Shown one piece after another: positions 12,633 to 35,679 of a stretch of 64,000 nt of DNA; positions within the stretch are counted from its first letter, which is position 1, and every line of letters starts with the position of its first letter. Under the pieces are notes generated by a model, which was not told the DNA's origin, did not search any database, and saw nothing but the letters and a program-made list of their open reading frames with translations. Made by a program: the position numbers and the translations under genes. The DNA is from Isurus oxyrinchus (lineage: Eukaryota): NCBI GenBank assembly GCA_026770705.1, contig JANJGN010000150.1:1-64000 (forward strand), in the 5' to 3' direction.

Positions 12633-12674
12633 CTGTGTGTTTAATTAGAAAGGGTTGATGTGTCACTGTGAGAC

Positions 12675-12688: not shown

Positions 12689-12914
12689 GGTAATCAGTGA
12701 GAAGATCGAGGATGTTTTGTGCTCTCAGCAAAACGTTTACCATGTGTGATCTGTCAGCTCATATTTGGGCAGCTGTAGTCATGAAGCTTCTCCATTGGCT
12801 CCGTGGGATTAGACTCCTCCCCCTTACCACAGAGGCTGAAACTCAGGCGATAGAGTCCCCAATACAGGTCTCGGGCCGTATGATACATTTCAACGACCCC
12901 TGTTATCATTACGG

Positions 12915-15365: not shown

Positions 15366-15505
15366 TCAAACAGTCTGTCGACTTCCTTTCACTGTTTGTC
15401 TCTCCCAGACACAGACTCCAGTGATAGTGATAACCACAGCCACAAGGAATATCACAGCTCGTATTCCCAGGATCAGGATCACATGCAGAATCTCTCCTCC
15501 ACTGT
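15366..15505 (-). CDS. Gene B terminal exon: transmembrane segment with intramembrane Arg and short tail (activating type)
   Basis: ttctctag acceptor, phase 1: SGGEILHVILILGIRAVIFLVAVVITITGVCVWERQTVKGSRQTV*; Arg codon at 15459-15461; no Tyr in the tail. Confidence 0.85.
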
Positions 15506-17174
15506 CTAGAGAACACACAGAAAGAAATCATCACTGACTCTCCGCTTTCAATCTCTCACTCTGGCTGAACAATCAAGCTTCATATCACTGCAACATTTGC
15601 TGTAATATTGACCCATCCACTGGGATTCAATGTGGAATGAATGTTTTCATTGTAAACACTCTAAGAGTGGACAATCGGAACTTTCCCCTCAGCGTGGAAC
15701 ATTGGTGAGAATGGATCATTGTGCTGTTGGACTCCCTGTCCAATGTTACTCTCCATCGCTGTGTACAGGATTGTGCTGTAGAAAATTCTGGAAACGTTTA
15801 GTGCAGGGTGGAAATCCATCTCGGACGCGTGTGCGAATCGAGCAGAATCGAGATGGACTCCCCCACGGACTTACACCCCCCGCTTAATAAACAGTTCCAA
15901 TCTTTACCCAGAGAGAGGGGAGAATGTGGAACTCACTCCCACAGGGATTGGTTGAGGTGAACAGTATCGATGTATTTAAGGGGCAGGAGGGTCGGTAACC
16001 AGAGGGACACAGATTGACCAACTGGAGGGGGAGATGAGGAGAATTTGTTTTGACAGAGCGAGTTGTTGTGATCTGGAAGGTGCTGCCTGAAAGGGCGGTG
16101 GAAGCAGATTCAATAGGAACTTTCAAAAGGGAAATTGGATAAACACTTGAAGGAGGAAGATGGGGTAAAGTGGAGTGGTGGTTAGTGGATCTGATTGGAT
16201 AGAACATTGAAAGACCTGGCACAGGCACAGTGGGCTGAATGGCCTCCTCCTGTGCTGTATCATTCTCCACTTCCATGATCTCTCCCCCAGTCAGTAACCA
16301 CTCCAGATCCCTCTTGAAGGCGACAGAGAAACAGGAACTACCACACCCACTGACAGCACATTCTCAAGGATCCCTACTTTCTGGGAAAAGATGAACTCCC
16401 CAACATCCAGCCTATTCCTGCTTCCCAGAGAGTGTAAACCCTTCAGGGAGGCACTGAGGAAGTTTTCAATAAAATGAATTATCAAATCTATCATTTGAGA
16501 AATAATTTAATTCTGATGAACTCACAGCTTGTGTAGCAAACTGGGAAGTGGAGTTGCTTGAAAAGCTGGGAAACACAAGGATTAAGTGCTACAATGCCAC
16601 CACTGGTGGGAGACTGTAACTACAGCGTGACGTTTACATAGGCAGTCATCATTATAAACAGGGGCATTGGACATACTGGGAAATATGTGCACTGGAAAGG
16701 TGAGTAAATGATGTAAGATTTTCACCAGCAGGAATTCTCTAACTAAACCTCTCCACTTCTCTCTTACTCTCAGATACACAAACAAAATCACACAGAATCA
16801 GATAAGGAGGAGTTGGGGCCGGTGATTGTTCGAAGGGTTAGCTTTCAGGAAGCTTCTTAAAGGGAGAGAGAGAGTTGGAGAGGCAGAGAGTATCTGTGAG
16901 TGTCTCTATGCATCTGAGTGTCTGTAATAGACTTTGTAATTTCCATTTCTTCCATAAACATGATTGGGAACACAAATCCCAGAATCCAGGCCAACTCTCC
17001 AGTGCAGTACTCAGGTAAGCCACAGGGCAGTGTGTGCTAGTGTGTTTGTTCGTGAGTGTGTCTTTGTAATTGCTCATACATGTGTGTCTGCACGTGTCTA
17101 TTTAGTTCTGTATATTTGTGTGTGTTTGTGCAATGTTTGAATCTGCGAGAGATGTTGAAGTCTGTGTAACTCAC

Positions 17175-17327
17175 GTTCCACACTGATGGTTATGAACCCC
17201 TCCACTGCTCCATGTTCATTCTCTGCCACACACTGATAGTCTCCAGTGTCCCGATATGTAATGGGAGGAATCACCAACCACAGCTCATTGTTGGAACTTG
17301 TTCTGTTCATTTGGACATTAAGATGTC
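17175..17327 (-). pseudogene. Gene B remnant of third Ig exon (3' half only)
   Basis: NRTSSNNELWL..DTGDYQCVAENEHG..SVE with intact gtgagt donor; 5' half (first Cys, Trp) replaced by unrelated sequence compared with 26714-26994. Confidence 0.8.
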
Positions 17328-17650
17328 AGGGCAGGAATCAAGAAGCCCGTTCGCAGGATTACCAACAGAAAGTGAACCACAATTTATACTTAATGGGAAG
17401 AGAGTGCTGATTGGTTGGCAAGTGGTCTCTGATAGGTGGAGGTGTTGCCATGGAGAATGGTGTGTGCGAGATGTAAACTTTAGACAGCTTGTCTCTTTAT
17501 TCAGTAATAATCAAATAAAGATCAATTAACTTCAATCGACTGTGAAGCACTTTGAGAGGTCTGAGAATGTGGACACTGAGAACGGGCTGCACTGTCAGAG
17601 GGTCAGCGCTGAGGGAGTGCTGATGTAGAATGAAAGGTGTATGTACTTAC

Positions 17651-17947
17651 CTTGCACAGTTAGTACGAGGGTCCGCTCCGATGAAACAGATGGATATCTC
17701 ACTCTGCAGCTGAGTGTGTGTCCGTGGTGTTTGAGTGATGGGATCAGGGTCAGAACAGAAGTATAGGTCAGAGTGACACCATGCTGAGTTACAGTGTTTG
17801 AGACTGATCCAGGTACGTCAGTGGGAGTGTCCCAGGTTAAGACAGGTGCTGCTGTTCCATTGCACGTTGTGTTGAAGGTGCAGCTTACATCCACAGGCTT
17901 TCCTGCAATAATTTCAGCAGGGAATATCATGGGTTTATCTGTGGAAT
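17651..17947 (-). CDS. Gene B exon: C2-set Ig domain
   Basis: 297 nt, phase 1-1, near-identical to the other C2 exons. Confidence 0.85.
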
Positions 17948-18806
17948 CTAACAGACAGAAAATGGATCCTTTTAGAGAAATATAACGTGAAGCATCAGTT
18001 CAAATAGAAACCACAGTCCCACAAGAGAAAGCACTTTTACAAGGATGATATCAGAACTGAGAGGTTACAATGATCAGGAAAGATTTTCTTGCTCTTTGGC
18101 AGTTGTGTTTCTGTCTCTCAGCTTAATACACGTTCACTCCGAGACATGTGAATTGAGAACACTGGATGAGAGAAGAGGCTCAGACCAGAGATTGGAGTTA
18201 AAAGCAGAATACTGCGGATGCTGGAAATCTGAAACAAAAACAAAAATTGCTGGAAAGACTAAGCAGGTCTGACAGTATCAGTGGGGAGGAAGACAGGGTT
18301 AACGTTTCGAGTCCGTATGACTCTTCATCAGACCAGAGGTTTGAGTTCACTGGCTTCTCATTTCCTCAGTGATCTGGGTGATTTAGCACCTTGTGGTTTG
18401 TTGGATCTTGCTGTGCACAAACTGCCTGCTGTGTTTTACATCTGTGACCACAATTCAGGAATAATTTCATTGGCTGTGAATGGATTTGGATCCTCCTGAG
18501 GTGGTAAATTGCGCTGCAGAAATGCACATCATTCTTTTATCGATACGTCAGACTTTTAAACAGGACAGGAGAGATTGATGGGAGTGGATAACCTGATAAT
18601 ACAGTTAATGCTTTTAATCATTGATATTAAAGTGAGTATTAGAGGTTGCTTTAGGACTGAACTGGAAGCTATCACCAGGTTATTGAGAATCAGACAGTGT
18701 GTTATAATAAGCTGTGTTTTGTGTTAATATGTAAACGTCACAGTTTGTGTTATTTCCCATTGAGTGTTGAATGTGAATTGTTGAGTAATTATAACACAGC
18801 ACTTAC

Positions 18807-19181
18807 CAGAAACATGAAGCTGGGTTACAGGGTAATAGTTATGGCTCGGACCATTGTCAAATTCTATTCTGAAAAAATAAGGTCCTGCATCTTCCCGTCT
18901 GATGTTGTTTATAATCAGGGAACAGTCGCCATCTTTCAGGTCTCCAGACAGCCTGGTCCGATGGTGGAATCTTTGATCCCTGTGACTGTGACCCTCGGAA
19001 TGAAAGGCTATAGACCATTTCGGCTGTGGGTTCCCATCTATTCCTTTCAAGCAGATTCCGACACGTGATCTCCCTACGAAATTTGATAAGTAACTGTAAT
19101 GACATGGAATCTGTACACACGAACCATCCTGCGCTGTCACCTCTCGTGAAGTGTCGCCTTTTCAATCTTGTGACAGTCCAA
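18807..19181 (-). pseudogene. Gene B V-set exon with nonsense codon
   Basis: 375 nt, phase 1-1; TGG>TGA at 19162-19164 (QD* versus QEW in paralogues); C-strand Trp also changed to Cys (VGICLK); YFFRIE retained. Confidence 0.85.
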
Positions 19182-19884
19182 CTATGGAGAGAAATGTCAA
19201 TATTTAACTCTGGAAGGTTTGTAGATCCACTAGACTCGATATCCACCCCCTCCATCACTGGGGCTCAGTGGCTGCAGTGTGGACCATCTACAGGACACAC
19301 AAGGAACTCCCCAAGGTTTCACAACGGATGGAAGAGAATCCTGGACACAGGAGTGGACAAGTTCATTCTACATTGGCTCATGGTGCTCAGGACCCTGTTT
19401 AGTGAAGCCAGTCTTCCACCCAACACAGAGTCTACAAGACACACAGGGAAACTGTGTAAACATCTCATCTCTCTAAACTGACTGGTTTGAGCTTCGGTTT
19501 AACTTTCAGTATTTTTAAATTTCCATATTGTGGTTGCTATGGTGAAACTGTGCAGGAAGTGTGAGGGCTGGACTCTCTGTCTATTCTGACTGCAGCTGTG
19601 ATGTGGTCGTGGTGATTCTCAGTAAAATGAAACCCTCTGATCTCCTCCATCGCTGAGGTTTAGGGAGTGAATTCCAGAGCTCAGGTCCCAGGCAGCTGAA
19701 GGCCCGGCCGCCAGTATTGGAGTGATGGGAATCGGGGGATGGTCAAGAGGCCGGAATTGGAGTAACACAGAGATCTGGGAAGTTGTTTGTGTGAGTTGCA
19801 GGAGGTTACAGAGATAAAGAGATAAGAATGATCTTTTACAAAGACTGTTAAACATAAATCTGTCCGAGCTGATGATGATATTAC

Positions 19885-19924
19885 CTTGGAGAAGTGACAG
19901 GTGGAAGTAAGATTTCCCGACCAT
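19885..19924 (-). CDS. Gene B leader exon coding part MVGKSYFHLSLLQ
   Basis: Exon 19885-19964, paralogous to 12058-12137. Confidence 0.8.
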
Positions 19925-20374
19925 CGTCCACTCCCAGATATTCCATCCACTTCTCACTCTCAAACTGTGAAAGAGAAAGGAGTTAATGAGACCTCACCTC
20001 TTGTCCGACAGCTCTCGAGAGATCAGAACTGCTTTTAGACAATGTCTTCATAGACTAATTTGATTCTCTGTGGGATGATAGGTGCTCTGCAGAGAGTTAC
20101 AAGTCTTTAAGTAAGACAAACAATGATTGATTTGCATTTCTATAGCACCTTTCACTATCTCAGGGCATCCCAAAGCTCATGTCTCTGCAGTTCCCTCATC
20201 CCTTGAGCTAGAAAGATGTTCTGTACAACAGACTTGAGTCTCACACCCAGAATTCAATAATCAGTAAAAATCTTTCAAAGGCATCAATCATTGGAATCTG
20301 TCTTTATAAAGTCACAACATCAACAAAGGACAGTGTTGGTGGTGGAAGTGAATTCCAATCATTCCGTTACTTAC

Positions 20375-20515
20375 CCAGGACCTGTCCGACTGCTCGCCTG
20401 GGGAGGAACTGCCCACACGCTCTGCTTGGGCTGAATGACCTCTTCCTGTGCTGCTCCCTATTTGTGTTTAATTAAAAAGGGTGCCTGTGTCACTGTGAGT
20501 CAAAATGAGGAAGTG
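20375..20515 (-). promoter_or_regulatory. Gene B 85-nt first-exon module with AP-1 (tgagtca) and PU.1/ETS site
   Basis: Exon ends at 20375 followed by a gtaagt donor; tgagtca at 20496-20502 abuts aaaatgaggaagtg at 20502-20515. Confidence 0.55.
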
Positions 20516-20629
20516 CTTGGTACCAAGTGAGAAAGCAACTCTTTGCCTCGCACTGTTAGAAAACTGTTAACCCTTTGCATGCCAATAATGTGGTTGAAGG
20601 GCCATCGACTGTTCATATGCAACAAGCTC

Positions 20630-21845
20630 GAGGGTTTGAATGGGCCTCCTCCTGTTCCTGTGTAACAGGCTCGAGGGGTCTAAATGGGCCTCCTCCTGTT
20701 CCAGTGTGACATGATTGTGTGGCTGATTAAGCCTCCCCCTGTTCCTGTGTAACAGTCTTTGGCAGGGCTGAATGTGCCTCCTCCTGTTCCTGTGTAACAG
20801 GCTCCAGGTGCTGAATGCCCTCCCCCTGTCCTTGTGTAACAGGCTCGAGTGTCCGAATAGGCCTCCTCCTGTTCCTGTGTAACAGGCTCAAGAGGCTGAA
20901 TGGATCTCCTTGTTTTCCTGTGTTACAGGTTAGATGGTCTGAATGGGCCACCTCCTGTTCCTGTGTAACAGGTTCAAGGGGACAGAATGGGCCTCCTCCT
21001 GTTCCTGTGTAACAGCATCATGGGGCTGAATGGGCCTCCACCTGTTCCTATCTAACAGGCTTGAGTGGCTGAATGGGCCTCCTCCTGTTCCTGTGTAACA
21101 GGCTTGATGGGGCTAAATGGAGCCCCTAATGTTCCTGTGTAACAAGCTTGTGGAGGCTGAATGGGTCTCCTGTACCTGTGTAACAGGCTCAAGGGGACAG
21201 AATGGGCCTCCTCCTGTTCCTGTGTAACAGGCTCGAGGGAACAGAATGGGCCTCCTCCTTTTCCTGTGTAACAGGCACGAGGGACTGAATGGGTTTCCTA
21301 TTCCTGTGTAAGTGGGTTGAGAGACTGAATGTCCTCTTCCTGTTCCTGGGTAACAGGCTCGAGGAGCTGAGACTCTCTCCTGTTCCTGTGGAAGGGTGTT
21401 GAGGGACTGAATGTCCTTTTCCTGTTCCTGTATAATAGGCTCAAGAGGCTGATGGGCTTTCTCCTGTCCTCATGTAACAGGCTTGAGTGGCTGAATGGTC
21501 CTCCTCCTGTTCCTGTGTAACAGGCTTGAGGGAATGAATGGGCCTCCTCCTGTTCCTGTGTAACAAGCTCGAGGGGGCTGAATGGGCCTCCTCCTGTTCC
21601 TGTGTAACAGGCTTGAGGGAATGAATGGGCCTCCTCCTGTTCCTGTGTAACAGGTTCGAGGGGGCTGAATGGCCTCCTGCTGTTCCTGTGTAACAGGATC
21701 AAGAGGCTGAATGGGCCTCCTCCTGTTCCTGTGTAACAGGCTCGAGGGGGCTGAATGGGCCTCCTCCTGTTCCTGTGTAACAGGCTCGAGGGGCTGAATG
21801 GCCTCCTGCTGTTCCTGTGTAACAGGATCAAGAGGCTGAATGTCC
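20630..21845. repeat. ~40-bp minisatellite (gggctgaatgggcctcctcctgttcctgtgtaacaggctcga)
   Basis: Tandem copies; unit resembles the CR1 3'-tail motif; paralogous array at 38278-39405. Confidence 0.92.
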
Positions 21846-21854
21846 TCCTGTCAT

Positions 21855-22066
21855 TAAAAATAAATACTGCAGATGCTGTAAATCTGAAATAAAAACAGAA
21901 AATGCTGCATTAACTCAGCAGGTCTGGTAGCAGCTGTGGAGAGAGAAACAGACTTCTTGCTTATAGACTCTGAAGAAGGGTCATACGGACTCGAAATGTT
22001 AATTCCGTTTATCTCTGCACAGATGCTGCCAGACCTACTCAGTTTCTCCAGCATTTTCTGTTTTTG
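21855..22066. mobile_element. Short inverted-repeat element of Penelope-associated type with hammerhead-like core
   Basis: aaaaacagaaaatgctg...agagaaac arm inverted against gtttatctct...cagcattttctgttttt; central ctgaaga-stem-gaaa. Confidence 0.6.
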
Positions 22067-23183
22067 TATCAGGTGCCCTCTTGTTCCTGTGTAGCAGGTT
22101 CGAGGGGGCTGAATGGCCTCCTCCTGTTCCTATTCAATGGGCAGTCAAAGAATGTCTGATTGGACCTCGAACCCAATTCTGTCCTCAGGACATTGACAGA
22201 AGGAGAGACCAGTTACAGGTTAATGCCGGAGGATTATTTATTTTCCCAATCTTTTATCCAAGTATCTCATCAAACACAGAGCAGAACCAGGATCAAGGAT
22301 GTTGGTCTCTGTGATCTGTAACACATCGCACAGTCCACCCATCCACTCAGCCTTCAGGATGGATGCTCATTGTACTCTCCAAGTGTGAAAGACTAAAATG
22401 ATGGTTTATTGCAGCTATATCTCATTCTGTTATCAAAGCTGTCTCATCCATCCATGACATATTGAAGAAGGTAAACCTGCAACCAATTTTTCACATCATA
22501 ATTTCCTATGTTCATTGGCAACATCAATGTAAACATGTCACGCTGAAATGATGTCCTGCCACCAGTGGTGGCACTGTAGCACATCTGTTATCCTCTGAGC
22601 TGCAGAGAATTTCTCAAATCTCCAATCAAATTGTTTCCCTGTTTCCGGGATTGCTGATGGTTTTGCTCTTTAACGATGAAGTGTAAAATCCAAATATATA
22701 TCTGAAAATACATTTGACTACAAAAAGCTGAGTAAATTTTACCAATCTCTTCTGCTCCAATTATCCACCGATCCTGCATTTCCTGAAGTCTACACTGGCT
22801 GATGAATATTCTGTAAACACTGACAGACAGGAAGGTGAATAACAGAATGAAAATTAACTCATAATCAAGGACACGGGATTGAATTTGTCCGTTCTGTACT
22901 GGTACATCATCGAACGATATCTAAAGACATTTACAATCAGATTGGAGAGAAGGATGTTTCCAACAGTGAGGGACAATTCTGAAGGAGGATGTTCGAATTG
23001 AAACCGACAGACAATCATCCTGGATAGATCATTCCAAAGAAATTCCATCACATTGTAACAAGAGGTTTAAATCCATTTCCTGGGAGTGAGTTCCTGTGGA
23101 TATTAGGAAGGTAAATTGGAGTTTTGAATGATTCTCCCGTTCTGTATTCTCCCCACACTGTGTGTGTCTCATTCTTGCTCAGT

Positions 23184-23300
23184 TTATAAATTCCCATAAA
23201 CAGAATCCTTGGCAAATTCACAGTTTGCGTAAAGATCATCATCTGTATCAGGATTGACTCCGCGGTTAGATTTCATTTCCAGATCCTTCTCATCTTTCTT
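23184..23300 (-). CDS. Gene C terminal cytoplasmic exon with ITIM
   Basis: ttacag acceptor, phase 0: KKDEKDLEMKSNRGVNPDTDDDLYANCEFAKDSVYGNL*; SVYGNL fits (S/I/V/L)xYxx(L/V). Confidence 0.88.
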   Translation of the reverse strand, partial: KKDEKDLEMKSNRGVNPDTDDDLYANCEFAKDSVYGNL

Positions 23301-23399
23301 CTGTAATAGAAACAGAAATGATCAGAGTGACAATCAGAGTGATCAGTGTTTAGTATTATTGATCCAAATCGAAAATTCCACCTACAATACATACATTAA

Positions 23400-23705
23400 T
23401 TATTGACACTGAACAGGGTTTGATTATTGATACTGAACGGGGTTTGATTATTGATTCTGAAGAGGGTTTGATTATTGATACTGAACAGGGTTTGATTATT
23501 GATACTGAATGGAGTTTGATTATTGATTCTGAACGGGGTTTGATTATTTATTCTGAACGGGGTTTGATTATTGATACTGAACGGGGTTTGATTATTGATT
23601 CTGAACGGTGTTTGATTATTGATTCTGAACGGGGTTTGATTATTGATACTGAACGGGGTTTGATTATTGATTCTGAACGGGTTTTGATTATTGATTCTGA
23701 ACGGT
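23400..23705. repeat. 24-bp minisatellite (tgattattgatactgaacggggtt)
   Basis: About a dozen tandem copies in the last intron of gene C. Confidence 0.92.
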
Positions 23706-23837
23706 GTTGGGTGTGAGTTTGGTTGGGTTTAAGAGTGACTGTATATAACATTGCAGATACAGGACTGGAGCAGCCATATCAATAACCAGGCTACTGGAGC
23801 AGCTGAGAGGCTGGGGATCCTGTGGTGTGTGACTCAC

Positions 23838-23942
23838 CTGATTCCTCAAAGCCCAACCACGCTCACAGTTTTCATAAACAGGACCTCGATATTCATCAAC
23901 ACGGTGGTTCGATTTGATTCCTGCTTTCCCCTCGCCTCTCTT
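23838..23942 (-). CDS. Gene C cytoplasmic exon with Tyr motif VYENC
   Basis: ttacag acceptor and CAG|gtgagt donor, 105 nt, phase 0-0: KRGEGKAGIKSNHRVDEYRGPVYENCERGWALRNQ. Confidence 0.82.
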
Positions 23943-24453
23943 CTGTAATAGAGATGGAAATGGACAGAGTGACAATCAACATGATGTGTATTCGGTGTTG
24001 GGTTTGATTACTGGGGAGAGAGTTCCAGATTTCCACTCCCCTTTGTGTGAAGAAGTGCTTCCTGACATCACCCCTGAATGGCCTGGCTCCAATCTGAAGT
24101 TCCAGCCCCCTTGTTCTGGACTCCACCCGACCCCCACCACCCACCCCCACCCGAGGGAATAGCTTCTCTCTATCGACCCTATCGAGTGTTTAATCAGTTT
24201 GAACCCCTCAATTAGATCCCTCCTTAATCTTCTAGACCCGAGGGAATATAATCATAGACTGTGTGTAACCTGTCTGCATAATTTAACCAGAAAGATGTTC
24301 TGTACAACAGACTTGAGTCTCACACCCAGATCTCAATAATCAGTAGAAATCTTTCAAAGGCATCAATCATTGGAATCTGTCTTTATAAAGTCACAACATC
24401 AACAAAGGACGGTGTTGGTGGTGGAAATGAATTCCAATCGTTCCATTACTTAC

Positions 24454-24538
24454 CCAGGACCTGTCCGACTGCTTGCCTGGGGAGGAACTGCCCATACGCT
24501 CTGCTTGGGCTGAATGACCTCTTCCTGTGCTGCTCCCT
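24454..24538 (-). CDS. Gene C juxtamembrane cytoplasmic exon (85-nt module)
   Basis: acag acceptor and gtaagt donor; phase 2 to 0 bridges the TM exon to the phase-0 tail exons: (K)GSSTGRGHSAQAERMGSSSPGKQSDRSW. Confidence 0.72.
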
Positions 24539-24829
24539 CTGTGTATTTAATGAGAAAGGGTTGATGTGTCTCTGTGAGTCAAATCAGAAATTGGGGAACA
24601 ATTCTGAAAACCCCTTCATTGAAACGTAGGGCCTTAGTGTTGTGTTGTAAACAAACTGTTAACCCTTTGTGTCCTGACTCTGTGACGTGATTCCTGTGTA
24701 AAGTTGAGCATTTGGTGAGCGACTTTCAATTCACTGCTCACTCCAGGTGTTGAGGTGGATCTTCTGAAGGAGCAGATGTTGCTCAGCGCTCCTTAAAAAT
24801 GTCAGATACTGAACATTGTGTCAGAGGAC

Positions 24830-25040
24830 GAGAGAGAGAATAAGAAGGAGAGCATTAGTGGAGATAGGAGAGAGAGTGAATGAGAGAAAGAATGAGAAGG
24901 AGAGCATTAGTGGAGATAAGAGAGAGAGTGAATGAGAGAGAGAGAATGAGAAGGAGAGCATTAGTGGAGATAAGAGAGAGAGTGAATGAGAGAGAGAGAA
25001 TGAGAAGGCGAGCATTAGTGGAGATAAGAGAGAGTGAATG
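24830..25040. repeat. AG-rich ~52-bp tandem repeat, about four copies
   Basis: gagaaggagagcattagtggagataagagagagagtgaat repeated. Confidence 0.85.
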
Positions 25041-25350
25041 AAACATGGAAAAAGGAAAGAGATTGCATTCACTAACAAAAGAAAGGTTTTCATTTATATA
25101 GCACCTTTCACATCCTCATTAGGTCACAAGGTATCTTATGGTCCAGGTCAACACTGCCAGTTACAGGACTGAGTTGTGAAACATTGAGTGTTGAATGAGA
25201 TGTTAAACAGTAGGTGAACATCAAAACTCTTCAGGGGCTGTGAAGGGTTTTGGATTGTAAAAGGTGCTATAGAAATGAAAGTTCTTTCTATAAGGAGAGA
25301 AGGTTGAAGAAAACATGTTCAAAAACAACCAATTAAAGCTTCACACTTAC

Positions 25351-25447
25351 TTTCTCACACACTTGAAGATGAAGAATCCACTCAGTCCAACACTCAAACA
25401 GATTCCAGCTCCAAGCAATCCTGCTTTCCATTCATTGGAATCTCGCC
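25351..25447 (-). CDS. Gene C transmembrane exon (no mid-membrane charged residue)
   Basis: ttttacag acceptor and gtaagt donor, 97 nt, phase 1 to 2: RDSNEWKAGLLGAGICLSVGLSGFFIFKCVRK. Confidence 0.87.
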
Positions 25448-25654
25448 CTGTAAAATCAGCCAATGAATGACTCCGGTACAGTTTGAGAATGGTTCCCTAT
25501 GTACATGTAGTAATTCTGAACTTGTGAAGTGATATTGTCTATGCATGAAAGGTCTATACAAATAAATTTATCTATGTAATATTTATTGATAATATCCATG
25601 TACATGCAGGTTTCTATAAGGAGGATTCACATATAACAGAGGTGCCAAGCTGCT

Positions 25655-26640
25655 GAGGTGACACACAGGATTACAAAAATTCCAAACAGCGGAAACAACA
25701 TGCTATAGACAGAGCAAAGCGATCCCACAACCAACGATTCAGATCTAAGCTCTGCAGTCCTGCCACATCCAGTCATGAATGGTGATGGACAATTAAAGAT
25801 CTAACAGGAGGAGGATGTTCCACAAATATCCCCATCCTTAATGATGGGGGAGCTCAGCACATCAGTGCAAACGACAAGGCTGAAGCATTGGCAACCATGT
25901 TCAGCCAGAAGTGCTGAGTGGATGATCCATCTCGGCCTCCTCCAGAGGGTCCCAGCATCACAGATGTCAGCTTTCAGACAATTCGATTGACTCCACGTGA
26001 CATCAGCAATCAGCTGATGATACTGGATACAGCAAAGGCTCTTGGTCCTGGCAACATCCCGGCAACAGGAAATAATGTGGCTACAAGAGCGGGTCAGAGG
26101 CTGGGAACTCTGTGGTGAGTAATTCAACTCCTGACCACCCAAAGCCTGTCCACCATCGGACAAGGCACAAGTCAGGAGTGTGATGGAATAATCTCCAATT
26201 GCCTGAATAAGTGCAGCTCCAACAACACTCAAGAAGCTCGACACCGTCCAGGAGCAGCTTGTTTGATCGACAGCCCATCCACCAGCATAAACATTCATAC
26301 CCTCCACCACTGGCACACAATGGCAGCAGTGTGTGCACCATCTACAAGATGCACTGCAGCAACTCACCAAGGCTCCTTCGACAGCACCTTCCAAACTCTT
26401 AACCTCTTCCACTGAGACAGTTCCAAGTCAGTGAGGTGTGTGATTTGGAAGCGAACTTGAGGTGTTGGTGTGCCCTGGGACTTGGAACTATATCGGACGT
26501 TCCTTCACCATCACTGGGACAAAATCCTGGAACTCCCTCCCTAACAGCACTGTGGGTGTGCGTACACCACATGGACTGCAGTGGTTAAAGAAGGCAGCTC
26601 ACCACCACCTTCTCAAGGGGCAGTTACAGATGCGCAATAA
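25655..26640 (+). mobile_element. Internally deleted non-LTR retrotransposon fragment
   Basis: DDPSRPPPE..IRLTPRDI..LDTAKALGPGNIPA, LINE ORF2-like; clade not firmly assigned. Confidence 0.65.
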
Positions 26641-26713
26641 TTTCTGGTCTTATCAACAATGCCCACATCCCATGAGCTAATAACAAGAGAACGTTCAATT
26701 CTGTGTAACTCAC

Positions 26714-26994
26714 GTTCCACAGTGATGTTATAAATCCCTCCACTGCTCCATGTTCATTCTCTGCCACACACTGATAGTCTCCAGTGTCCCTGGATGTAAC
26801 GTGAGGAATCACCAACCACAGCTCATTGTTGGAACTTGTTCTGTTCATTGGGACATTAAGATGTCGCCACGTCAGGTTAGAAGCTGGGAAGCTCTCGACA
26901 GAGCAGATTATCACTGCAGAATTCCCCTCAATTATATTGATCGATGAAGCGTTAATCATACCAAGAGAAGTAATTGAGAGATTCTGTGGTTTGT
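26714..26994 (-). CDS. Gene C third Ig exon (C2/I-set) with a 1-bp deletion near its 3' end
   Basis: 281 nt (not a multiple of 3); DKPQNLSI..IICSVESFPASNLTW..DTGDYQCVAENEHG; ATAACATCACT versus ATAACCATCACT in the paralogue at ~56637. Confidence 0.85.
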
Positions 26995-27124
26995 CTGAAA
27001 ACAAATAAAGATCAGTTACTTACATTGACTGTGAAACACTTTGAGAGACACTGAGAATGTGAAAGGTGTGATATCAATGTAGGTTCCTTCACCACAAAGC
27101 ACTTAATTCAGGCAGACACTTCAG

Positions 27125-27785
27125 TTCAGTACTGAGGGAGTGCTGTACTGTTGGAGGGTCAGTACTGATGGAGTGCTGCACTGTTGGAGGGTCAGTACTG
27201 AGGGAGAGCTGCCCCCTTGGAGCGTGAGTACTGATGACCTGCTGCACCGTTGGAGGGCGGTTACTGTGAAGTCTGGACTGCCGCATAGTCAGTATTGAGC
27301 AAGTACTTCACTGTCAGAGAATAGTACTGAGGGAGTGCTGAACTGTTGGAGGATCAGTACTGAGGGAGTGCTGCACTGTCGGAGGATCAGTACTGATGGA
27401 CTGGTGCACTGTCGGAGGATCAGTACTGAGGGAGTGCTGCACTGTCGGAGGGTAAGTACTGATGGAGTGGTGCACTGTCAGAGGGTCAGTACTGAGGGAG
27501 TGGTGAACTGTCGGAGGGTCAGTACTGAGGGATTGCTGCACTGTTGGAGGGTCAGTACTAGAGGAGTGTTGCACTGTTGGAGGGCCAGTACTGAGGGAGT
27601 GCTGCACTTTCGGAGGGTCAGTAATTAGGGAGCTCTGCACTGTTGGAGGGTCAGTACTGAGGGAGTGCCGCAGTGTCGGAGGGTCAGTACTGAGGGAGTG
27701 CTGCACTGTCGGAGGGTTAGTACTGAGGGAGTGCTGCACTGTCGGAGCGTCAGTAATTAAGGAGCTCTGCACTGTTGGAGGGTGA
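27125..27785. repeat. 30-bp minisatellite array
   Basis: Same unit as 35680-37965; continues at 30835-31525 beyond a CR1 insertion. Confidence 0.9.
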
Positions 27786-27794
27786 TAAGGCCAT

Positions 27795-30700
27795 AAGACC
27801 ACAAGACGTCAGAGCAGAAGGAGGCCATTCGGCCAGTCAACTCTGCTCCGCCATTCAATGATACCATGTCTGATCTGACAATCCTCAACTCCACTTTCCT
27901 GCCTTTTCCCCATAGCCTTTGATTCCCTGACTGATTAAAAAACTGTGTATCTCAGCCTTGAATATAATTAATGACCCAGCCTCTGCAGCTCTCTGTAGTA
28001 AAGAATTCCACACATTCACTACCCTCTGAGAGAAGAAACTCCTCATCTCTGTCTTAAATGGGTGACCCCTTACTCTGAGATTATGCCCTCTGGTCCTAGA
28101 CTCTCCCACAAGGGGAAACAACCTCTCAGCATCTACCCTGTCAAGCACCCTAAGAATCTTATATGTTTCAATAAGGTCAGCTCTCATTCTCCTAAACTCC
28201 AATGAGTACAGGCCCATCCTACTCAACCTCTCCTCATATGAAAATCCCTCCATTACTGGGATCAACCTAGTGAACCTTCTCTGGACTGCCTCCAATACCA
28301 GTACATCTTTCCTTAGATAAGGGAACCAAAACTGCGCACAGTATTCTAGGTGTGGTCTAACTAGTGCCTTGTATAGTTTTAGCAAGACTTCCCTATTTTT
28401 ATACTCCATTCCCTTTGAAATAAAGGCCAACATTCCACCTGCCTTCCCTATTAACTGTTGAACTTGTATGTTATCTTTCTGATGACCCCCAAATTCCTCT
28501 ATGCTTCAGCTTTCCAATGTCTTTCTCCATTGAAATAATATTCAGCTCCTCTATACATCCTGCCACAGTGCAGCAGCTCACATTTTCCCACATTATATTC
28601 CATCTGCCAAGTTGATGTCCACTCACTGAACCTGTCTATGTCTCTCTGTAGACTCTTCGTGTCACCCTCACCACTTGCCTTCCCATCTATTTTTGTGTCA
28701 TCCACAAACTTGGCGAAAGTACATTAATTTCCCTCATCCAAGTCATTAATATATATTGTAAATAATTGTGGCCCCAGCACTGATCCTTGTGGCACTCCAC
28801 AGATTGCCATCCTGAAAATGCCCCCCTTATCCCAACTCTCTGACTTCTATTAGTTAGTCGATCCTCTATCCATGCTAATATACTGCCCCCAACACCATGG
28901 GCTCTTATCTTATTAAGTAGCCTTATATGTGATACTTTACTGAACAACTTTTGGAAATCCAAATATATTACATCTACTGGTTCCCCTTTATCTATCCTGT
29001 TTGTTACCTCCTCAAAGAATTCTAATAAATTTGTCATGCATGATTTCCCCTTCATGAAGCCTGTGTGTGATTAAATTATGCATTTCTAAATAGTCTGCTA
29101 TTACATCCTTTATAATGGACTCTAACATGTTCCCAATGACAGATGTTAAGCTAACTGCCCTATAGTTACCTGTTTGTTGTCTCCCTCCCTTTTTGAATAT
29201 GGGTGTTACATTGGCAGTTTTCCAATCCTCTGGGAGTTTCCCAGAATCTAAGGATTCTTGGAAGATTAAAACCAGTGCATCCACTATCTCTGCATCTACT
29301 TCCTTTAATATCCTAAGATGCAACCTATCAGGTCCAGGGGACTTATCAGCCTTGAGACCCATTAATTTCGCTAGCGTTATTCTCTAGTGATAGTTACTGT
29401 ATTTATTTCCTCTCCCCACCCCCCTTTTGCCCCTTGATTATTTAGTATTTTTGGAATGCTATTAGTGTGTTCTACCGTGAAGACTGATGCAAAGTATTTA
29501 TTCAACTCCTCTGTCATTTTCTGGTTCCTCATTATTATTTCCCCAGCCTAGTTCTCTAAGGGGCCCATGTTCACTTTGGTCTCTCTCTCCTTTCTTATAT
29601 ATTTAAAGAAGCTTTTATTGTCCTTTTTTATATCAATTACTAGTTTACCTAGTTTTCTCCCTCTTTATTTATTTTTTGGTCATCTTCTGTTGGTTTTTAA
29701 ATCTCTCTCAATCCTCTGGCTTACCACTAATCTTTGTCGTGCTGCATGTTTTTTCTTTCAATTTGACACACACCTTAACTTCTTTGGTTAACCCAGGTTG
29801 GTTTATTCTCTTCCTACAATCCTTCTTCCTCACTGGGATATATCTTTGTTGTGAGTCATGAGCTATTTTCTTTAACATCTGCTTTGTTCATCCAGCATCT
29901 TTTCTGCTAAACCCCTTTCCCAGTCCACTCCAGACAACCCTGTCCTTATTCCTTTGTAATTAAACTTATTTAAGTCCAGCACAGTTGTTTCCGACCCAGG
30001 TTTCTCAGTCTCAAACGGAATGCTAAATTGTACCAGGTTATGGTTACTGTTTTCCAGGGGATCATTTATTCTGAGATCATGTATGAAACCTGCCTCATTA
30101 CACATTACCAGATCCAAAATAGCCTGATCCCTGGTTAGATCCACGACATATTATTCCAGGAAACTGTCTTGAATACACTCTATGAATTCTTGCTCATGGC
30201 TACCTCTGCCAATTGGGTTTTCCCAATCTACATGAAGATTAATGTACTGCCTTTTTTACATGCCCTCATTATCTCATGATTTATTGTCTGTCCTACAGCC
30301 GAGCTACAGTCATGGGGCTGATAGACCACTCCCACCAGTTCCTTGTTCCACTTGTTATTCATTACCTCGAGCCATATGGATTCTATACCCTCCGATCCAA
30401 GATCATTTCTTGCTTTCGTACTTATTCCATCTCCTATTAACAAAGCTACCCCACCACCTTTCCTTCCTGCCTGTCTTTTTGAAAAGTCACATACCCCTGA
30501 ATATTTATTTCAAAGCTTTGATCTCCTTGTAACCATGTCTCCATAATGGCTATAAGATCAAACCCATTAACCTCTAATTGTGCCTTTAATTCATTTATGT
30601 TGTTCCAAATACTATGTGCATTTAAGTCAAGAGCCATTAATTTTGTCTTTTTATCATTTTCCTCCCTCTGACACTATTTGCTGATGTATTTTAATGTTTG

Positions 30701-30835
30701 GACACTGTGTACCCACCTGTCACACGCTGGGTATCATCACCAAAACAGCTATCCTGCAATGCTGGCAAATCCTTTTGCTTTGTAAGCCTACATATACCCT
30801 CTCCAGAACACTCTGCCCATCTATTTAGTTTAAAG
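27795..30835 (-). mobile_element. CR1 LINE ORF2 (APE endonuclease + RT), decayed, inserted in the 30-bp satellite
   Basis: LNAHSIWN..IAIMETWL (endonuclease), KSPGPDRLHLRILKE, YLDFQK and LVRPHLEYCAQFW; 3' tail at ~27800. Confidence 0.92.
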
Positions 30836-31525
30836 GCAATACTGAGGGAGAGCAGCACTGTCAAAGGGTCATTACTGAGGGAGTGTTGCACAGTTGGAAG
30901 CTCTGGAACAAGGGACTGCAGCATTATCTGAGGGTCAGTCGGGAGGGAGGTATTCAATGTTGGATTGTAAGTTCTGAGGGAGCGCTGCAGAGTTGGAGGT
31001 TCAGTAGTGAAGGAGTGCTGCACTGTCAGAGGGTCAGTACTGAGGGAGTGCTGCACTGTCAGAGGATCAGTACTGAGGGAGTGCTGCACTGTTGGAGGGT
31101 CAGTACTGTGGGAGTGCTGCACTGACGGAGGATCAGTACGGAGAGATTTCTAAACTGTTGGAGGATCAGTACTGAGGGAGTGCTGCACTGTCAGAGGGTC
31201 AGTACTGAGAGAGAGTTGCACTATCAGTGGGACAGGACTGAGGGAGTGCTGCACTGTCAGAGGGACAGGACTGAGGGAGTGCTACACTGTCAGTGGGTCA
31301 GGACTGAGGGAGTGCTGCACTGTCAGAGGGTCAGTACTGAGGGAGTGCTGCACTGTCGGAGGGTCAGTACTGAGGGAGTGCTGACTGTCAGAGGGTCAGT
31401 ACTGAGGGAGTGTTGCACTGTCATAGGGTCAGTAATGAGGGAGTGCTGCACTGTCATAGGGTCAGTACTGAAGGAGTGCTGCACTGTCAGAGGGTCAGTA
31501 CCGAATGAGTGCTGCACTGTCATGG
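30835..31525. repeat. 30-bp minisatellite array
   Basis: Visible tandem units. Confidence 0.9.
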
Positions 31526-31746
31526 GGTGAGGACATTGCGATTCCTGCTCTGCTCTATCGGTCTCTTGGCTGGAAATAAAAGCCGCTGTGTTACTGTTCA
31601 GAAACTGTTATTAATTGTGTTCTGGTCACTATTTTCCCTAAAAAACAGATTATCTGATTCTCATCAGAATACCTTTCTATGGGATCCTGCTGTGCATTAT
31701 CTACACTGTTCTAGCTAATGTACAATGAAAGGTCGTCCGTACTTAC

Positions 31747-32043
31747 CTTGCACAGTGAGTACGAGGGTCCGCTCCGATGAAACAGATGGATATCTCACTC
31801 TGCAGCTGAGAGTGTGTCCGTGGTGTTTGAGTGATGGGATCAGGGTCAGAACAGAAGTATAGGTCAGAGTGACACCATGCTGAGTTACAGTGTTTGAGAC
31901 TGATCCAGGTACGTCAGTGGGAGTGTCCCAGGTTAAGACAGGTGCTGCTGTTCCATTACACGTTGTGTTGAAGGTGCAGCTTACATCCACACGCTTTCCT
32001 GCAATAATTTCAGCAGGGAATATCGTGGGTTTATCTGTGAAAT
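31747..32043 (-). CDS. Gene C exon: C2-set Ig domain
   Basis: 297 nt, phase 1-1, canonical splice sites. Confidence 0.9.
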
Positions 32044-32902
32044 CTAACAGACAGAGAATGGATCCTTTTAGAGAAATATAACGTGAAGCATCAGTTCAAA
32101 TAGAAACCACAGTCCCACAAGAGAAAGCACTTTTACAAGGATGATATCAGAACTGAGAGGTTACAATGATCAGGAAAGATTTTCTTGCTCTTTGGCAGTA
32201 GTGTTTCTGTCTCTCAGCTTAATACACGTTCACTCCGAGACATGTGAATTGAGAACACTGGATGAGAGAAGAGGCTCAGACCAGAGATTGGAGTTAAAAG
32301 CAGAATACTGTGGATGCTGGAAATCTGAAACCAAAACAAAAATTGCTGGAAAGACTCAGCAGGTCTGACAGTATCAGTGGAGAGGAAGATAGGGTTAACG
32401 TTTCGAGTCCGTATGACTCTTCATCAGACCAGAGGTTTGAGTTCACTGGCTTCTCATTTCCTCAGTGATCTGGGTGATTTATTACATTGTGGTTTGTTGG
32501 ATCTTGCTGTGCACAAACTGACTGCTGTGTTTTACATCTGTGACTACAATTCAGGAATAATTTCATTGGCTGTGAAGGGATTTGGATCCTCCTGAGGTGG
32601 TAAATTGCGCTGCAGAAATGCACATCTTTCTTTTATCGATACGTCAGCCTTTTAAACAGGACAGGAGAGATTGATGGGAGTGGATAACCTGATAATACAG
32701 TTAATGTTTTTAATCATTGATATTAAAGTGAGTATTAGAGGTTGCTTTAGGACTGAACCGGAAGCTATCACCAGGTTATTGAGAATCAGACAGTGTGTTA
32801 TAATAAGCTGTGTTTTGTGTTAATATGTAAATGTCAAAGTTTGTGTTATTTCTCATTGAGTGTTGAATGTGAATTGTTGAGTAATTATAACACAGCACTT
32901 AC

Positions 32903-33271
32903 CAGAAATGTGAAGCTGGGTTACAGGGTAATAGTTATGGCTCGGACCATTGTCAAATTCTATCCTGAAAAAATAAGGTCCTGCATCTTCCCGTCTGATG
33001 CTGTTTATAATCAGGGAACAGTCGCCATCTTTCAGGTCTCCAGACAGCCGGGTCCGATGGTGGAACCGTGGTAACTCGTGACTGTGATCCTTGGAGTGAA
33101 AGGCAATGGGAGCCCAGGGAATCTGTTTCTCATTATTAAACCAGACTCCACCTCGCGGTTTGCTTTCCAAATGTGATGGATAACTGTAATGACATGGAAT
33201 CTGTACACACGAACCTTCCTGCGCTGTCACCTCTCGGGGACTGTCACCTTTCCACTCTTGTGACAGTCCAA
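32903..33271 (-). CDS. Gene C exon: V-set Siglec-like domain
   Basis: 369 nt, phase 1-1; CVQIPC, GVWF, DCSL and YFFRIE intact. Confidence 0.92.
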
Positions 33272-33902
33272 CTGGGGAGAGAAATATCAATATTTAACTC
33301 TGGAAGGTTTGTAGATCCACTAGACTCGATATCCACCCCCTCCATCACTGGGGCACAGTGGCTGCAGTTTGGAACATCTACAGGACACACAAGGAACTCC
33401 CCAAGGTTTCACAATGGATGGAAGAGAATCCTGGACACAGGAGTGGACAAGTTCATTCTACTTTGGCTCATGGTCCTCAGGACCCTGTTTAGTGAAGCCA
33501 GTGAGACAGTGTCACTGTGCCTTGTATTATAATGCTCCTGTGTAGCCCCTTGGATTGTTTTTTTTTACAGTTAAGGCGCTATGTAAATATAATCTATTGC
33601 TCTCTGCTCATCTGGACCATTTGGATTGTTAATTTCAAGCGGCCTGGTGACTGCTTCATGTTCAGTCCAAATGCAGCCTCTAATTATCACTTTAATGTCA
33701 ATGATTAAATGTGACCCAACACACTGTCTACAAGACACACCAACTGAGATCCATTCAGTGCTGATTTACAAGACAGGACAATGGATTAGGAGCCGTCAGA
33801 ACTCCCCCCATTATCACCGTCATGAATCACTAATTAGCCTAACATTCCTGTCTGCTCTTCAACACAGCTGATTGGCTAATCTGATTCAATCTGATTGGTG
33901 CA

Positions 33903-34006
33903 CTTTGGACCTTCATTGTCTGAGGAATCTCTTTGGATCCTCATTGTTTTAGGAATATCTTTGGATCCTCATTGTTTAAGGAATCTCTTTGGATCCTCAT
34001 TGTCTA
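33903..34006. repeat. ~28-bp tandem repeat, about four copies (ctttggatcctcattgtttaaggaatct)
   Basis: Directly visible. Confidence 0.8.
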
Positions 34007-34806
34007 AGGGATTATTTCTGATCCAAACCCCATATTGTTGTATTGTTGATTCCGATGCAGCATTGTAGACTGACTTGTCCCCAAGCTCAGCACTGACCCT
34101 ACTCCAGCAGACACTGTGAAACACACTAACAAAGTGCCTCTAGCCTGAGCTCTGCATGTGTCGAGAGAAAGACAAATATACAAACTGAATATTGACACCT
34201 TTACACACAGACAGCTTTACCTTCCTTCTCTCTTTCAGTTATCTTGCTCCCTTATTGAAGTATCTAGCAAGGTGAGAATGGACAGGAAGTGTGACACTGA
34301 ACAGCCTGTCTATTCTAGGAGCTGCTGTGTTGTCTTCATGGGAAATTCTGAATAAAATCAGCAAAAGACACATTTCAGGATATTGCTATCAGACACCTAA
34401 CATAGGGAGAGACTTCATCCTCCAGTTTTTATCCCTGATTTTCTACTCAACCTTTTACCACCCTTCCCCCCATCCACACTGACTTACATAGGCTCCCAGT
34501 CAAGCAGATCCTCCATTTTAAGATTCTCATGCTCAATTCCCAATCCCGCCAACCCCCTCTCCACTCGCTGGCTCTGTAACCTCAACCAGCCCCTTCAACC
34601 CTCAGAGATCTCTGCTCTCCTCCAATTCTGCTGTCAGACAGGGAGTCAGTGTATATCAGTGAGCACAGTGGTGATGGGTCAATGGGACTTGGTGTGTGTT
34701 TGTACACTGGCTCACTGCTGAATCTGTTCTCAATCACAGCTCAATAAGAATGATCTTTTACAAAGACTATTAGCCATAAATCTGTTTGAGCTGATGATGA
34801 TATTAC

Positions 34807-34846
34807 CTTGGAGAAGTGACAGGAGGAAGTAAGATTTCCCGATCAT
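34807..34846 (-). CDS. Gene C leader exon coding part MIGKSYFLLSLLQ
   Basis: ATG at 34846, phase-1 gtaat donor, acceptor near 34889. Confidence 0.85.
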
Positions 34847-35297
34847 TGTCCACTCCCAGATAATTCCTCAGCTTCTAACTCTGAAGTTCTGAAAGAGAAA
34901 GGAGTTAATGAGACCTCACCTCTTGTCCGACAGCTCTCGAGAGATCAGAACTGCTTTTAGACAATGTCTTCACGGATCTAATTTGATTCTCTGTGGGATG
35001 ATAGGTGCTCTGCAGAGAGTTACAAGGCTTTAAGAAAGAAAAACATTGAAGGACTTGCATTTCTATAGCACCTTTCAACACCTCAGGATATCCCAAAGCT
35101 CATGTCCCTGCACTTCCCTCATCCCTTGAGCTAGAAAGATGTTCTGTACAACAGACTTGAGTCTCACACCCAGATCTCAATAATTAGTAGAAATCTTTCA
35201 AAGGCATCAATCATTGGAATCTGTCTTTATAAAGTCACAACATCAACAAAGGACGGTGTTGGTCGTGGAAGTGAATTCCAATCGTTCCGTTACTTAC

Positions 35298-35438
35298 CCA
35301 GGACCTGTCCGACTTCTCGCCTGGGGAGGTACTGCCCACACGCTCTGCTTGGGCTGAATGACCTCTTCCTGTGCTGCTCCCTCTGTGTATTTAATTAGAA
35401 AGGGTTGATGTGTCACTGTGAGTCAAAATGTGGAAGTG
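35298..35438 (-). promoter_or_regulatory. Gene C 85-nt first-exon module (35298-35382) with AP-1 and ETS-core site
   Basis: tgagtca at 35419-35425 followed by aaaatgtggaagtg. Confidence 0.55.
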
Positions 35439-35679
35439 GTCACTTTGTGAGGATGCAGCTCATGTTTAGAGTTTTTTGAAGCTGTTAACCCTTTGCGTTC
35501 TGGACTTGTGATGATATTTCTGCTCAAAAGTGGAAAGTCATTGACCAGGAATTTCTCCTGTGGGTCATTGGGTTTCAAACCCTCTCTCGCTCTCTGAGTG
35601 AGAAGGTCGTCTGTTCGAGATTCATTTGGCAAAATTCAGACTGCCAAACCAGACCGGCACTCGGTGTCAGGACTGAGAG

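Follow-up and report, generated by a model that had tools for sequence, protein, structure and literature searches.

The closest described counterparts of the genes reported here are the human Siglec pairs Siglec-5/-14 and Siglec-11/-16, in which a form with a tyrosine-bearing tail is matched by a nearly tailless form with a basic residue in the transmembrane (TM) segment, and CD22, an inhibitory Siglec with a YENV Grb2 site beside its immunoreceptor tyrosine-based inhibitory motifs (ITIMs). The fish NITR and LITR families are lineage-specific tandem expansions with activating and inhibitory forms and hypervariable V loops, but their V domains are not of the Siglec type. Fish were reported to have Siglec-1, CD22, MAG and Siglec-15 and to be without CD33-related Siglecs (Bornhöfft 2020, PMC7226832); that paper covers bony fish only and nowhere mentions sharks. 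The whale shark genome paper lists Siglecs among the gene families arising with jawed vertebrates, and our literature searches found no paper on shark Siglecs. We analysed a stretch of 64,000 nucleotides (nt) from the shark Isurus oxyrinchus (assembly GCA_026770705.1, contig JANJGN010000150.1, positions 1 to 64,000), here called the window, in which two adjacent genes, B and C, had been taken in a sequence-only reading for a paired activating and inhibitory receptor system. In our judgement, B and C are probably tandem members of a large, recently duplicating, cassette-built elasmobranch family of Siglec type, B having an end that places an Arg in the membrane (the Arg-TM end) and C an end with a tail of YxN motifs. 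The pairing idea appears to hold better at the level of the family than for B and C themselves. The family is not hidden, as NCBI automatic annotation already calls it Siglec; what is new at this locus is a revised map of the exons, the reading of the tail as a YxN tail, and the damage found in both genes.

Exon anatomy and Siglec-type identity of B and C

B and C are tandem single-V genes, both on the minus strand. Their exon models were built per exon, and each exon was searched singly, never as part of a joined spliced protein. Every junction in the two genes is AG/GT, and the phases are consistent. The exons of B are as follows.

19885-19924, minus strand, leader exon of B, 40 nt, with an ATG start and a GT donor, ending in phase 1 and reading MVGKSYFHLSLLQ
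18807-19181, minus strand, V-set exon of B, 375 nt, with a TGA inside and the Arg codon of YFFR at 18868-18870
17651-17947, minus strand, C2-set exon of B, 297 nt, open reading frame intact
17173-17325, minus strand, remnant of the third Ig exon (Ig3) of B, 3' half only, from window alignment and tblastn
15366-15505, minus strand, terminal Arg-TM exon of B, 140 nt, encoding a stalk, a TM segment with Arg, a 12-residue tail and the stop

The exons of C are as follows.

34807-34846, minus strand, leader exon of C, 40 nt, encoding MIGKSYFLLSLLQ, with 13/13 residues equal to basking shark model P0168
32903-33271, minus strand, V-set exon of C, 369 nt, intact, with the Arg codon of YFFR at 32964-32966
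31747-32043, minus strand, C2-set exon of C, 297 nt, intact
26714-26994, minus strand, Ig3 (I-set) exon of C, 281 nt, the undeleted form being 282 nt
25351-25447, minus strand, TM exon of C, 97 nt, encoding an uncharged TM and then KCVRK, phase 1 to phase 2
24454-24538, minus strand, cytoplasmic exon 1 (cyt1) of C, 85 nt, a sequence present six times in the window
23838-23942, minus strand, cytoplasmic exon 2 (cyt2) of C, 105 nt, phase 0 to 0, containing DEYRGPVYENC
23184-23300, minus strand, last exon of C, 117 nt, encoding DLYANC, 7 residues, SVYGNL (23187-23204) and the stop

When the V exon of C was compared with all PDB sequences, the best 17 matches were all Siglecs, with E values from 1.3e-15 to 4.6e-12; they included Siglec-5 (1.3e-15), Siglec-7, Siglec-8, MAG (3e-14), CD33, Siglec-10 and sialoadhesin. 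The first non-Siglec match was pIgR, at 1e-8 and over 39 residues only. With the top PDB matches all Siglecs, assignment of this domain to a non-Siglec V-set family is ruled out. The YFFRIE of the window V domains aligns with YFFRVE of Siglec-5 and YFFRME of Siglec-7, the position of the sialic-acid Arg, and we infer that V domains of the B and C type would bind sialic acid. The V hallmarks noticed earlier, SCVQIPC (CxxxPC), DCSL and YFFR, are in the V exons of both genes. Also present is the extra Cys of the C2 domain: the C2 exon has three Cys, and in the alignment the extra one (TTC) lies opposite DNC of MAG domain 2, the bonds being predicted only. Pfam assigned V-set and Ig_CD22 to the V exon of C, C2-set_2 to its C2 exon and Ig_3/I-set to its Ig3 exon. 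The C2 of C matches MAG domain 2 and CD33 domain 2, while its Ig3 is a generic I-set domain that, among Siglecs, is matched best by MAG domain 4.

A full HMMER search through 1.8 billion representative proteins returned 253 at E<=1e-10. Nearest among these relatives are RefSeq models of more than 20 sharks, rays and skates, which bear the names Siglec-5/7/8/10/11/12/13/14/15/16, CD33-like or MAG-like. The public proteins nearest to the window are those of the great white shark, Carcharodon carcharias (93-98% identity in C2 and V), and the basking shark, Cetorhinus maximus (96%); among the relatives compared, no public protein is 100% identical to the window. The PDB matches and the RefSeq relatives together bear out the claim that Siglec-type receptors occur in cartilaginous fish.

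The leader of B resembles the MIGKSYFLLSLLQ leader of RefSeq shark models, and the exons of B, taken without the Ig3 remnant, total 852 nt, or 283 codons and a stop. A pyrimidine tract and an AG acceptor stand upstream of the terminal exon, which starts in phase 1 and encodes DSGGEILHVILILGIRAVIFLVAVVITITGVCVW ERQTVKGSRQTV before the stop. As proposed, this single last exon places an Arg inside the membrane segment (codon 15459-15461) and its tail lacks Tyr; we count 12 tail residues, not 11. The 5' half of the Ig3 exon has been replaced by unrelated sequence, and the remnant is probably not used. The TGA in the V exon, at 19162-19164, sits where C and all relatives have a Trp, which we take to be the equivalent of sialoadhesin Trp2, a sialic-acid contact. 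In the PDB match table query residue 5 stands opposite chain residue 2, which fits the Trp2 equivalence but is no proof of it. B is thus a pseudogene in this assembly, as the sequence-only reading had already noted in calling it disabled, with its stop at the conserved Trp.

The uncharged TM of C was found at 25351-25447 as described. Its tail had been drawn with three exons, and there are actually four (TM, 85 nt, 105 nt and last), cyt2 at 23838-23942 having been missed. Great white model P0254 matches cyt2 at 97% over its residues 480-514, and basking shark P0168 at 89%. Since cyt2 starts and ends in phase 0, its omission is frame-neutral, as in P0016 and P0162. In the Ig3 exon of C one base is missing between 26726 and 26727 that is present in B and in the plus-strand copy (ATAA-CATCAC in C versus ATAACCATCAC in the other two). 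Inclusion of Ig3 throws the TM exon out of frame, with a stop after 17 codons, and without Ig3 the remaining 1110 nt are in frame as 369 codons and a stop. C is therefore in frame only when the frameshifted Ig3 is skipped. Rescue by a donor 4 nt downstream was also considered and rejected; its use would bring the exon back to phase 1, but the sequence, A|GTTACA, is poor for a splice donor. Annotated isoforms of one basking shark gene have two (P0168), one (P0172/P0167) or no (P0171) Ig3 exons, and because isoforms there vary in Ig3 number, skipping of Ig3 in C is plausible.

Transcripts, damage and the question of a pair

RNA evidence came from Logan contigs of four runs (X1, X15, X17 and X18) aligned to 23100-27100, the 3' half of C; in such contigs RNA level and RNA strand are not readable and close paralogues are not separable. 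Record 17 of X17 (1131 nt) runs from 23942 to 23838 and then directly from 23300 to 23100, which is cyt2 spliced to the last exon, and loose ends of X15 contigs at 23303 and 23838 agree with this junction. Record 20 of X17 and record 25 of X18 match 25351-25447 and 23838-23942 end to end, with foreign flanks on both sides. In X17 and X18 the exon bins are covered, and coverage of the non-repeat intron bins is zero. The Ig3 contigs of X17 and X18 show zero mismatches across 209, 144 and 94 nt. Contigs carrying the extra Ig3 base were seen in X1, X15 and X18; most of the depth in X1 and X15 is without it, which fits a real deletion in at least some copies. RNA had been suggested as the check on the proposed junctions. 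It directly supports the cyt2-to-last-exon splice and, to the base, both boundaries of the TM exon of C, but not the entry into that TM exon.

B and C had been described as near-identical in leader, V framework and C2. That description stands for the leader (95% nt identity), for C2 (98% nt, 97% amino acid (aa) identity) and for V strands A, B and D to G, which are nearly identical, and the V-C2 intron is 97.7% identical. Over the whole V exon, however, identity is 83.9% nt and only 72.8% aa; past strand B, some 30 residues bear no relation between the two genes, reading YLSNFVGRSRVGICLKGIDGNPQPKWS in B and YPSHLESKPRGGVWFNNEKQIPWAP in C. In known Siglecs the region after strand B is the C-C' loop, which sets glycan specificity. 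With this region differing, B and C would not be expected to share a ligand, unlike Siglec-5 and Siglec-14. The V of C is 89% identical to that of a great white Arg-TM model, P0198. A pair of the Siglec-5/-14 type would have near-identical ligand-binding domains, a basic TM residue with a short motif-free tail in one member, which would associate with DAP12, FcR-gamma or another adaptor chain, a working ITIM in the other, and both partners intact and expressed. The terminal exon of B has the basic TM residue and the short motif-free tail. The V domains, at 72.8% aa, are not near-identical, and the partners are not both intact, B having its TGA and C its Ig3 frameshift. Because of the stop codon in B and the frameshifted Ig3 in C, the two genes are no functional pair in this assembly. 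As the region after strand B differs completely, the proposal of a Siglec-5/-14-type pair fails for B and C.

Several observations weigh against our reading of B and C as members of a cassette-built family with distinct ends. Both genes are damaged as assembled. One X15 contig joins 25351 to 23942 with cyt1 skipped, a junction that would break the frame unless further, unaligned letters separate its two sides. Among the contigs aligned over 23100-27100 there is no junction into 25447, whether from Ig3 or from C2. No transcript linking the C2 of B to 15505 was seen either, the aligned range being the 3' half of C only. The Gnomon models of relatives are imperfect evidence of architecture, as some are chimeric: P0171 and P0260 run from cyt1 into the leader region of the next gene, which makes read-through or chimeric transcripts or models likely.

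We consider it possible, if somewhat less probable than not, that the B/C stretch consists of decaying duplicates without present function, the working genes of the family lying elsewhere. B has its TGA at 19162-19164 and half an Ig3 exon, and in C the Ig3 is frameshifted. Homology of B to the double-V gene ends at 15836/57984 with no Arg-TM exon for that neighbouring gene in the window, the last exon has an orphan copy at 40488-40604, and the introns are full of repeats, among them a fragment that looks by eye like a long interspersed nuclear element (LINE), a reading not confirmed by Pfam. Set against this, every exon of C apart from Ig3 is open, with canonical splice sites, and the Ig3-skipped form runs for 369 codons in frame. 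RNA contigs with 0-2 mismatches cover the Ig3, TM, cyt2 and last exons of C, with close paralogues as a possible source, and the stop of B and the deletion of C could be allelic, since contigs with undeleted Ig3 exist.

A self-comparison of the window gave segmental duplicates 88-96% identical, one copy being inverted, and six Siglec-type V exons were found:

2759-3229, minus strand, Siglec-type V exon
6310-6798, minus strand, Siglec-type V exon
18727-19161, minus strand, Siglec-type V exon
32856-33293, minus strand, Siglec-type V exon
52245-52721, plus strand, Siglec-type V exon
54636-55103, plus strand, Siglec-type V exon

The inverted match between B and the plus-strand double-V gene, at 93%, ends at 15836/57984, about 330 nt short of the Arg-TM exon. 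Past 57984 the plus-strand copy passes into a different repeat, so this double-V gene has no Arg-TM exon in the window. Each TM exon, that of B and that of C, occurs once in the window. The cyt1 sequence is present in six copies:

12512-12634, minus strand, cyt1 copy
20339-20458, minus strand, cyt1 copy
24454-24538, minus strand, cyt1 of C
35253-35390, minus strand, cyt1 copy
38056-38148, minus strand, cyt1 copy
44685-44777, plus strand, cyt1 copy

Ahead of both B and C a copy sits some 450 nt upstream of the leader exon of that gene, and those at 12512-12634 and 44685-44777 are, by position, upstream of the two double-V genes. The orphan copy of the last exon of C at 40488-40604 (minus strand), ending …DLYANCTFAKDSVYGNL before the stop, is 85% identical to the end of P0254. 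It is inside a duplicated block, 39345-40712 versus 22077-23411 (87%), and no TM, C2 or V exon was found upstream of it on the same strand within the window. The C2-Ig3 intron of C holds, at 27885-30640 on the minus strand, a string of broken open reading frames (ORFs) that by eye suggest a non-LTR retrotransposon, with its endonuclease and its reverse transcriptase; on these ORFs Pfam found nothing at E<=0.01. Long minisatellite arrays flank and interrupt the Siglec-type genes, at 12905-13930, 27126-27783, 30837-31522 and 35666-37965, and also at 20585-21850 and 38266-39406. Their units, of 33 nt (the largest array being 2.3 kb) and about 43 nt, are common to the duplicated gene units.

Signalling ends across the family

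The ends of B and C were compared with those of annotated relatives, of which the following great white RefSeq models are the most informative.

P0198, CD33-like, V-C2-ArgTM
P0173 and P0176, Siglec-12, V-V-C2-ArgTM
P0016 (XP_041037180.1), V-C2-TM-cyt1-last
P0254, MAG-like X4, ...Ig3-TM-cyt1-cyt2-last

The Arg-TM exon of B is 93% identical to the ends of P0173 and P0176, 89% to that of P0198 and 78-82% to those of Scyliorhinus and Chiloscyllium models. P0173, P0176 and P0198 join C2 (...TVQ) directly to DSGGEIL..., the same junction as proposed for B. The ILGIRA core is invariant in the eight homologous Arg-TM ends that were found, which come from Carcharodon, two Scyliorhinus species and Chiloscyllium. 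The view that this ORF arose by chance is rejected, since the exon is 89-93% identical to terminal exons of annotated models, has its acceptor in phase 1 and shares the unvarying ILGIRA core. So strong a conservation of the Arg-TM segment points to a partner within the membrane. Intact Arg-TM relatives, the absence of which would have told against the sequence-only reading, do exist elsewhere, in annotated models of the great white, two catsharks and a bamboo shark.

The TM exon of C is 100% identical to that of P0260 and 97% to that of P0254, and P0254, P0168 and P0016 have the same order of TM, cyt1, optional cyt2 and last exon as C. The tail of C has four tyrosines, in DEYRGP, VYENC, LYANC and SVYGNL, and only the last of these fits the ITIM rule, (S/I/V/L)xYxx(I/V/L). 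We compared this tail with those of 46 relatives chosen because they end in YxN[ILVM]. The residue at Y-2 was S in 19, A in 7, P in 7, I in 5, Q in 3, D in 2, N in 2 and V in 1, so that 25/46 have S, I or V there and 21/46 (about 46%) have A, P, Q, D or N, which lies outside the ITIM rule. Of the homologous last exons that BLAST retrieved without regard to the motif, those present in the tail alignment have Asn at Y+2, and the spacing of YANC, 7 residues and YGNL is kept from sharks to rays. The Grb2 SH2 domain prefers Asn at Y+2. In mammals YxNM is the DAP10/CD28 motif, which binds Grb2 and PI3K, and YxNM is the homologous terminal motif of P0026 and P0154 (rays), of P0045 and P0289 (Arapaima, a bony fish), and of P0056 and P0077.

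These observations raise the possibility that the tail of C is not inhibitory at all but a positive or adaptor-coupling tail of the YxN (Grb2 SH2) or YxNM type, in which case B and C would not have opposite ends. The frequency of relatives that violate the ITIM rule at Y-2, the Asn at Y+2 in the motif-independent last exons, the three YxN motifs of C itself (VYENC, LYANC and VYGNL) and the YxNM endings of the ray, Arapaima and further relatives all lean that way. Yet the SVYGNL of C does match the ITIM consensus and its +3 residue is not Met; CD22, which is inhibitory, likewise combines YENV with ITIMs; and the family retains a distinct Arg-TM form, such as usually accompanies an inhibitory one. 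On balance a non-inhibitory tail seems to us unlikely. The earlier identification of SVYGNL as an ITIM thus survives as a fit to the consensus, while an inhibitory sign for the tail is plausible only, Y-2 being variable in relatives and Y+2 being Asn. The favoured reading is that the tail, once phosphorylated on Tyr, would recruit Grb2-type adaptors and/or SHP phosphatases, with net inhibition as in CD22.

The CD33-type tail (LLYANINF, about 20 residues, TEYAQIRF) was found in the relatives P0002, P0005, P0012, P0017 and P0204. The classical tail with ITIM and ITIM-like motif (LxYAxL, TEYSEI/V) is present neither in C nor elsewhere in the window. In sum, the family is probably built from cassettes. 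The ectodomain is assembled from a leader, a V-set domain with the sialic-acid Arg, a C2 domain and optional I-set exons, and is joined to one of three ends. The end used by B is the single terminal exon with a very conserved TM, a buried Arg and a 12-residue tail, which to signal would require a chain with an immunoreceptor tyrosine-based activating motif (ITAM) as adaptor, predicted to pair through the Arg, like mammalian Siglec-14/-15/-16. The end used by C is an uncharged TM and three small cytoplasmic exons with YxN motifs, the last of which also fits the ITIM rule, and the third end, outside this window, is the CD33-type tail with ITIM and TEYAQI. A tailless cassette with a charged TM and tails with tyrosine motifs, on very similar ectodomains, are thus found as proposed within the family, but not as an opposite-sign working pair in B and C.

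V-domain ancestry and comparison with known systems

A tree of 61 V domains was made with IQ-TREE under the C20 mixture model over 122 columns; its references exclude curated MAG, Siglec-15 and sialoadhesin. For word-based searches P0016 and P0153 were used as queries, and these gave elasmobranch proteins only; with the shark MAG-like P0126 as query, CD22 and Siglecs of frog and turtle came up, and a curated mammalian MAG did not. The V domains of the window fall inside a clade of 12 shark sequences (99/94), which is itself within an elasmobranch-only group. The sister of the mammalian and frog CD33-type Siglec clade (100/99) is another shark group, of "MAG-like" proteins of 626-629 aa (92/89). 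A constraint that unites the window family with the tetrapod CD33-type clade costs 12.4 log-likelihood units, with p = 0.10 in the approximately unbiased (AU) test, MAG, Siglec-15 and sialoadhesin references being absent; this is no rejection, and the CD33-related label of the sequence-only reading is neither upheld nor refuted. As far as V-domain sequences go, the data show a Siglec-type, elasmobranch-specific expansion, and the elasmobranch-only lineage fits the independent expansion that had been suggested.

It might be argued that the family is the true sister or orthologue of the tetrapod CD33-related Siglecs, paired CD33-type Siglecs being ancestral to jawed vertebrates and lost in teleosts. 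The top PDB scores are to the CD33-related Siglec-5, -7 and -8, other family members have the tail LLYANINF...TEYAQIRF, and the AU test did not reject the union with the tetrapod clade. In the V tree, however, a different shark group is sister to that clade and the window family lies in the separate elasmobranch-only group; MAG nearly equals Siglec-5 in PDB score for the V of C (56 vs 61 bits, with CD22 at 26); and the tree lacks curated MAG, Siglec-15 and sialoadhesin. We regard this orthology as improbable.

The tail type (Arg-TM, YxN or ITIM with TEY) switches seven times among the 16 typed rows of the V tree, whereas a minimum of two switches would do if tails had followed V domains; this count is limited by low tree resolution inside the clade and by the chimeric nature of some models. 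The V of P0254 is MAG-like (CSFDFP…YYFYVD), only 31% identical to that of C, and has no Arg at the YFFR position. Since P0254 joins the C-type Ig3-TM-cyt1-cyt2-last series to this distinct V, the signalling cassettes are common to distinct ectodomain families. A bolder form of the idea, that sharks and rays repeatedly swap a single portable Arg-TM exon and tyrosine tails of two kinds among hypervariable, sialic-acid-binding V domains in a system sister to the tetrapod CD33-related Siglecs, is one to which we give as little credence as to the orthology itself. If it were true, the ancestor of jawed vertebrates would already have had paired Siglec signalling, and the textbook view of fish as lacking CD33-related Siglecs would apply to teleosts only.

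Cartilaginous fish have a large family of Siglec type with both activating-type and tyrosine-tail forms, and paired Siglec-like signalling would either reach the base of jawed vertebrates or have arisen again independently. With its exchanged signalling cassettes the family is a ready-made subject for study. It is the whole family that gives the finding its value; the locus adds exon anatomy, an exon that had been missed and the caution that the so-called ITIM is really a YxN motif.

The great white models share exons, exon order and junction residues with the window, at identities of 89-93% for Arg-TM, 97-100% for the TM of C, 97% for cyt2, 86% for the last exon and 93-98% for C2. They represent another individual, paralogue or species, and are automatic and unpublished. 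CD22 (Siglec-2) resembles C in having a YxN motif in its tail, and Pfam Ig_CD22 hits the V of C. Unlike C, CD22 has seven Ig domains and several true ITIMs, and its V scores 26 bits where Siglec-5 scores 61. The window resembles human Siglec-5/-14 and Siglec-11/-16 in its V-set domain with the essential Arg followed by C2, in having a tyrosine-tail form and a nearly tailless form with a basic TM residue, and in the tandem arrangement of genes with near-identical exons and introns (C2 98% nt, V-C2 intron 97.7%). It differs in that the ligand-binding domains of the human pairs are more than 99% alike, while the V domains of B and C are 73% identical in aa with the block after strand B replaced; the tail of C is a YxN set, not ITIM plus ITIM-like; and both copies in the window are damaged. 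Unlike in the human pairs, the shark Arg-TM has a terminal exon to itself, and this exon also follows ectodomains of the single-V, double-V and multi-Ig3 kinds.

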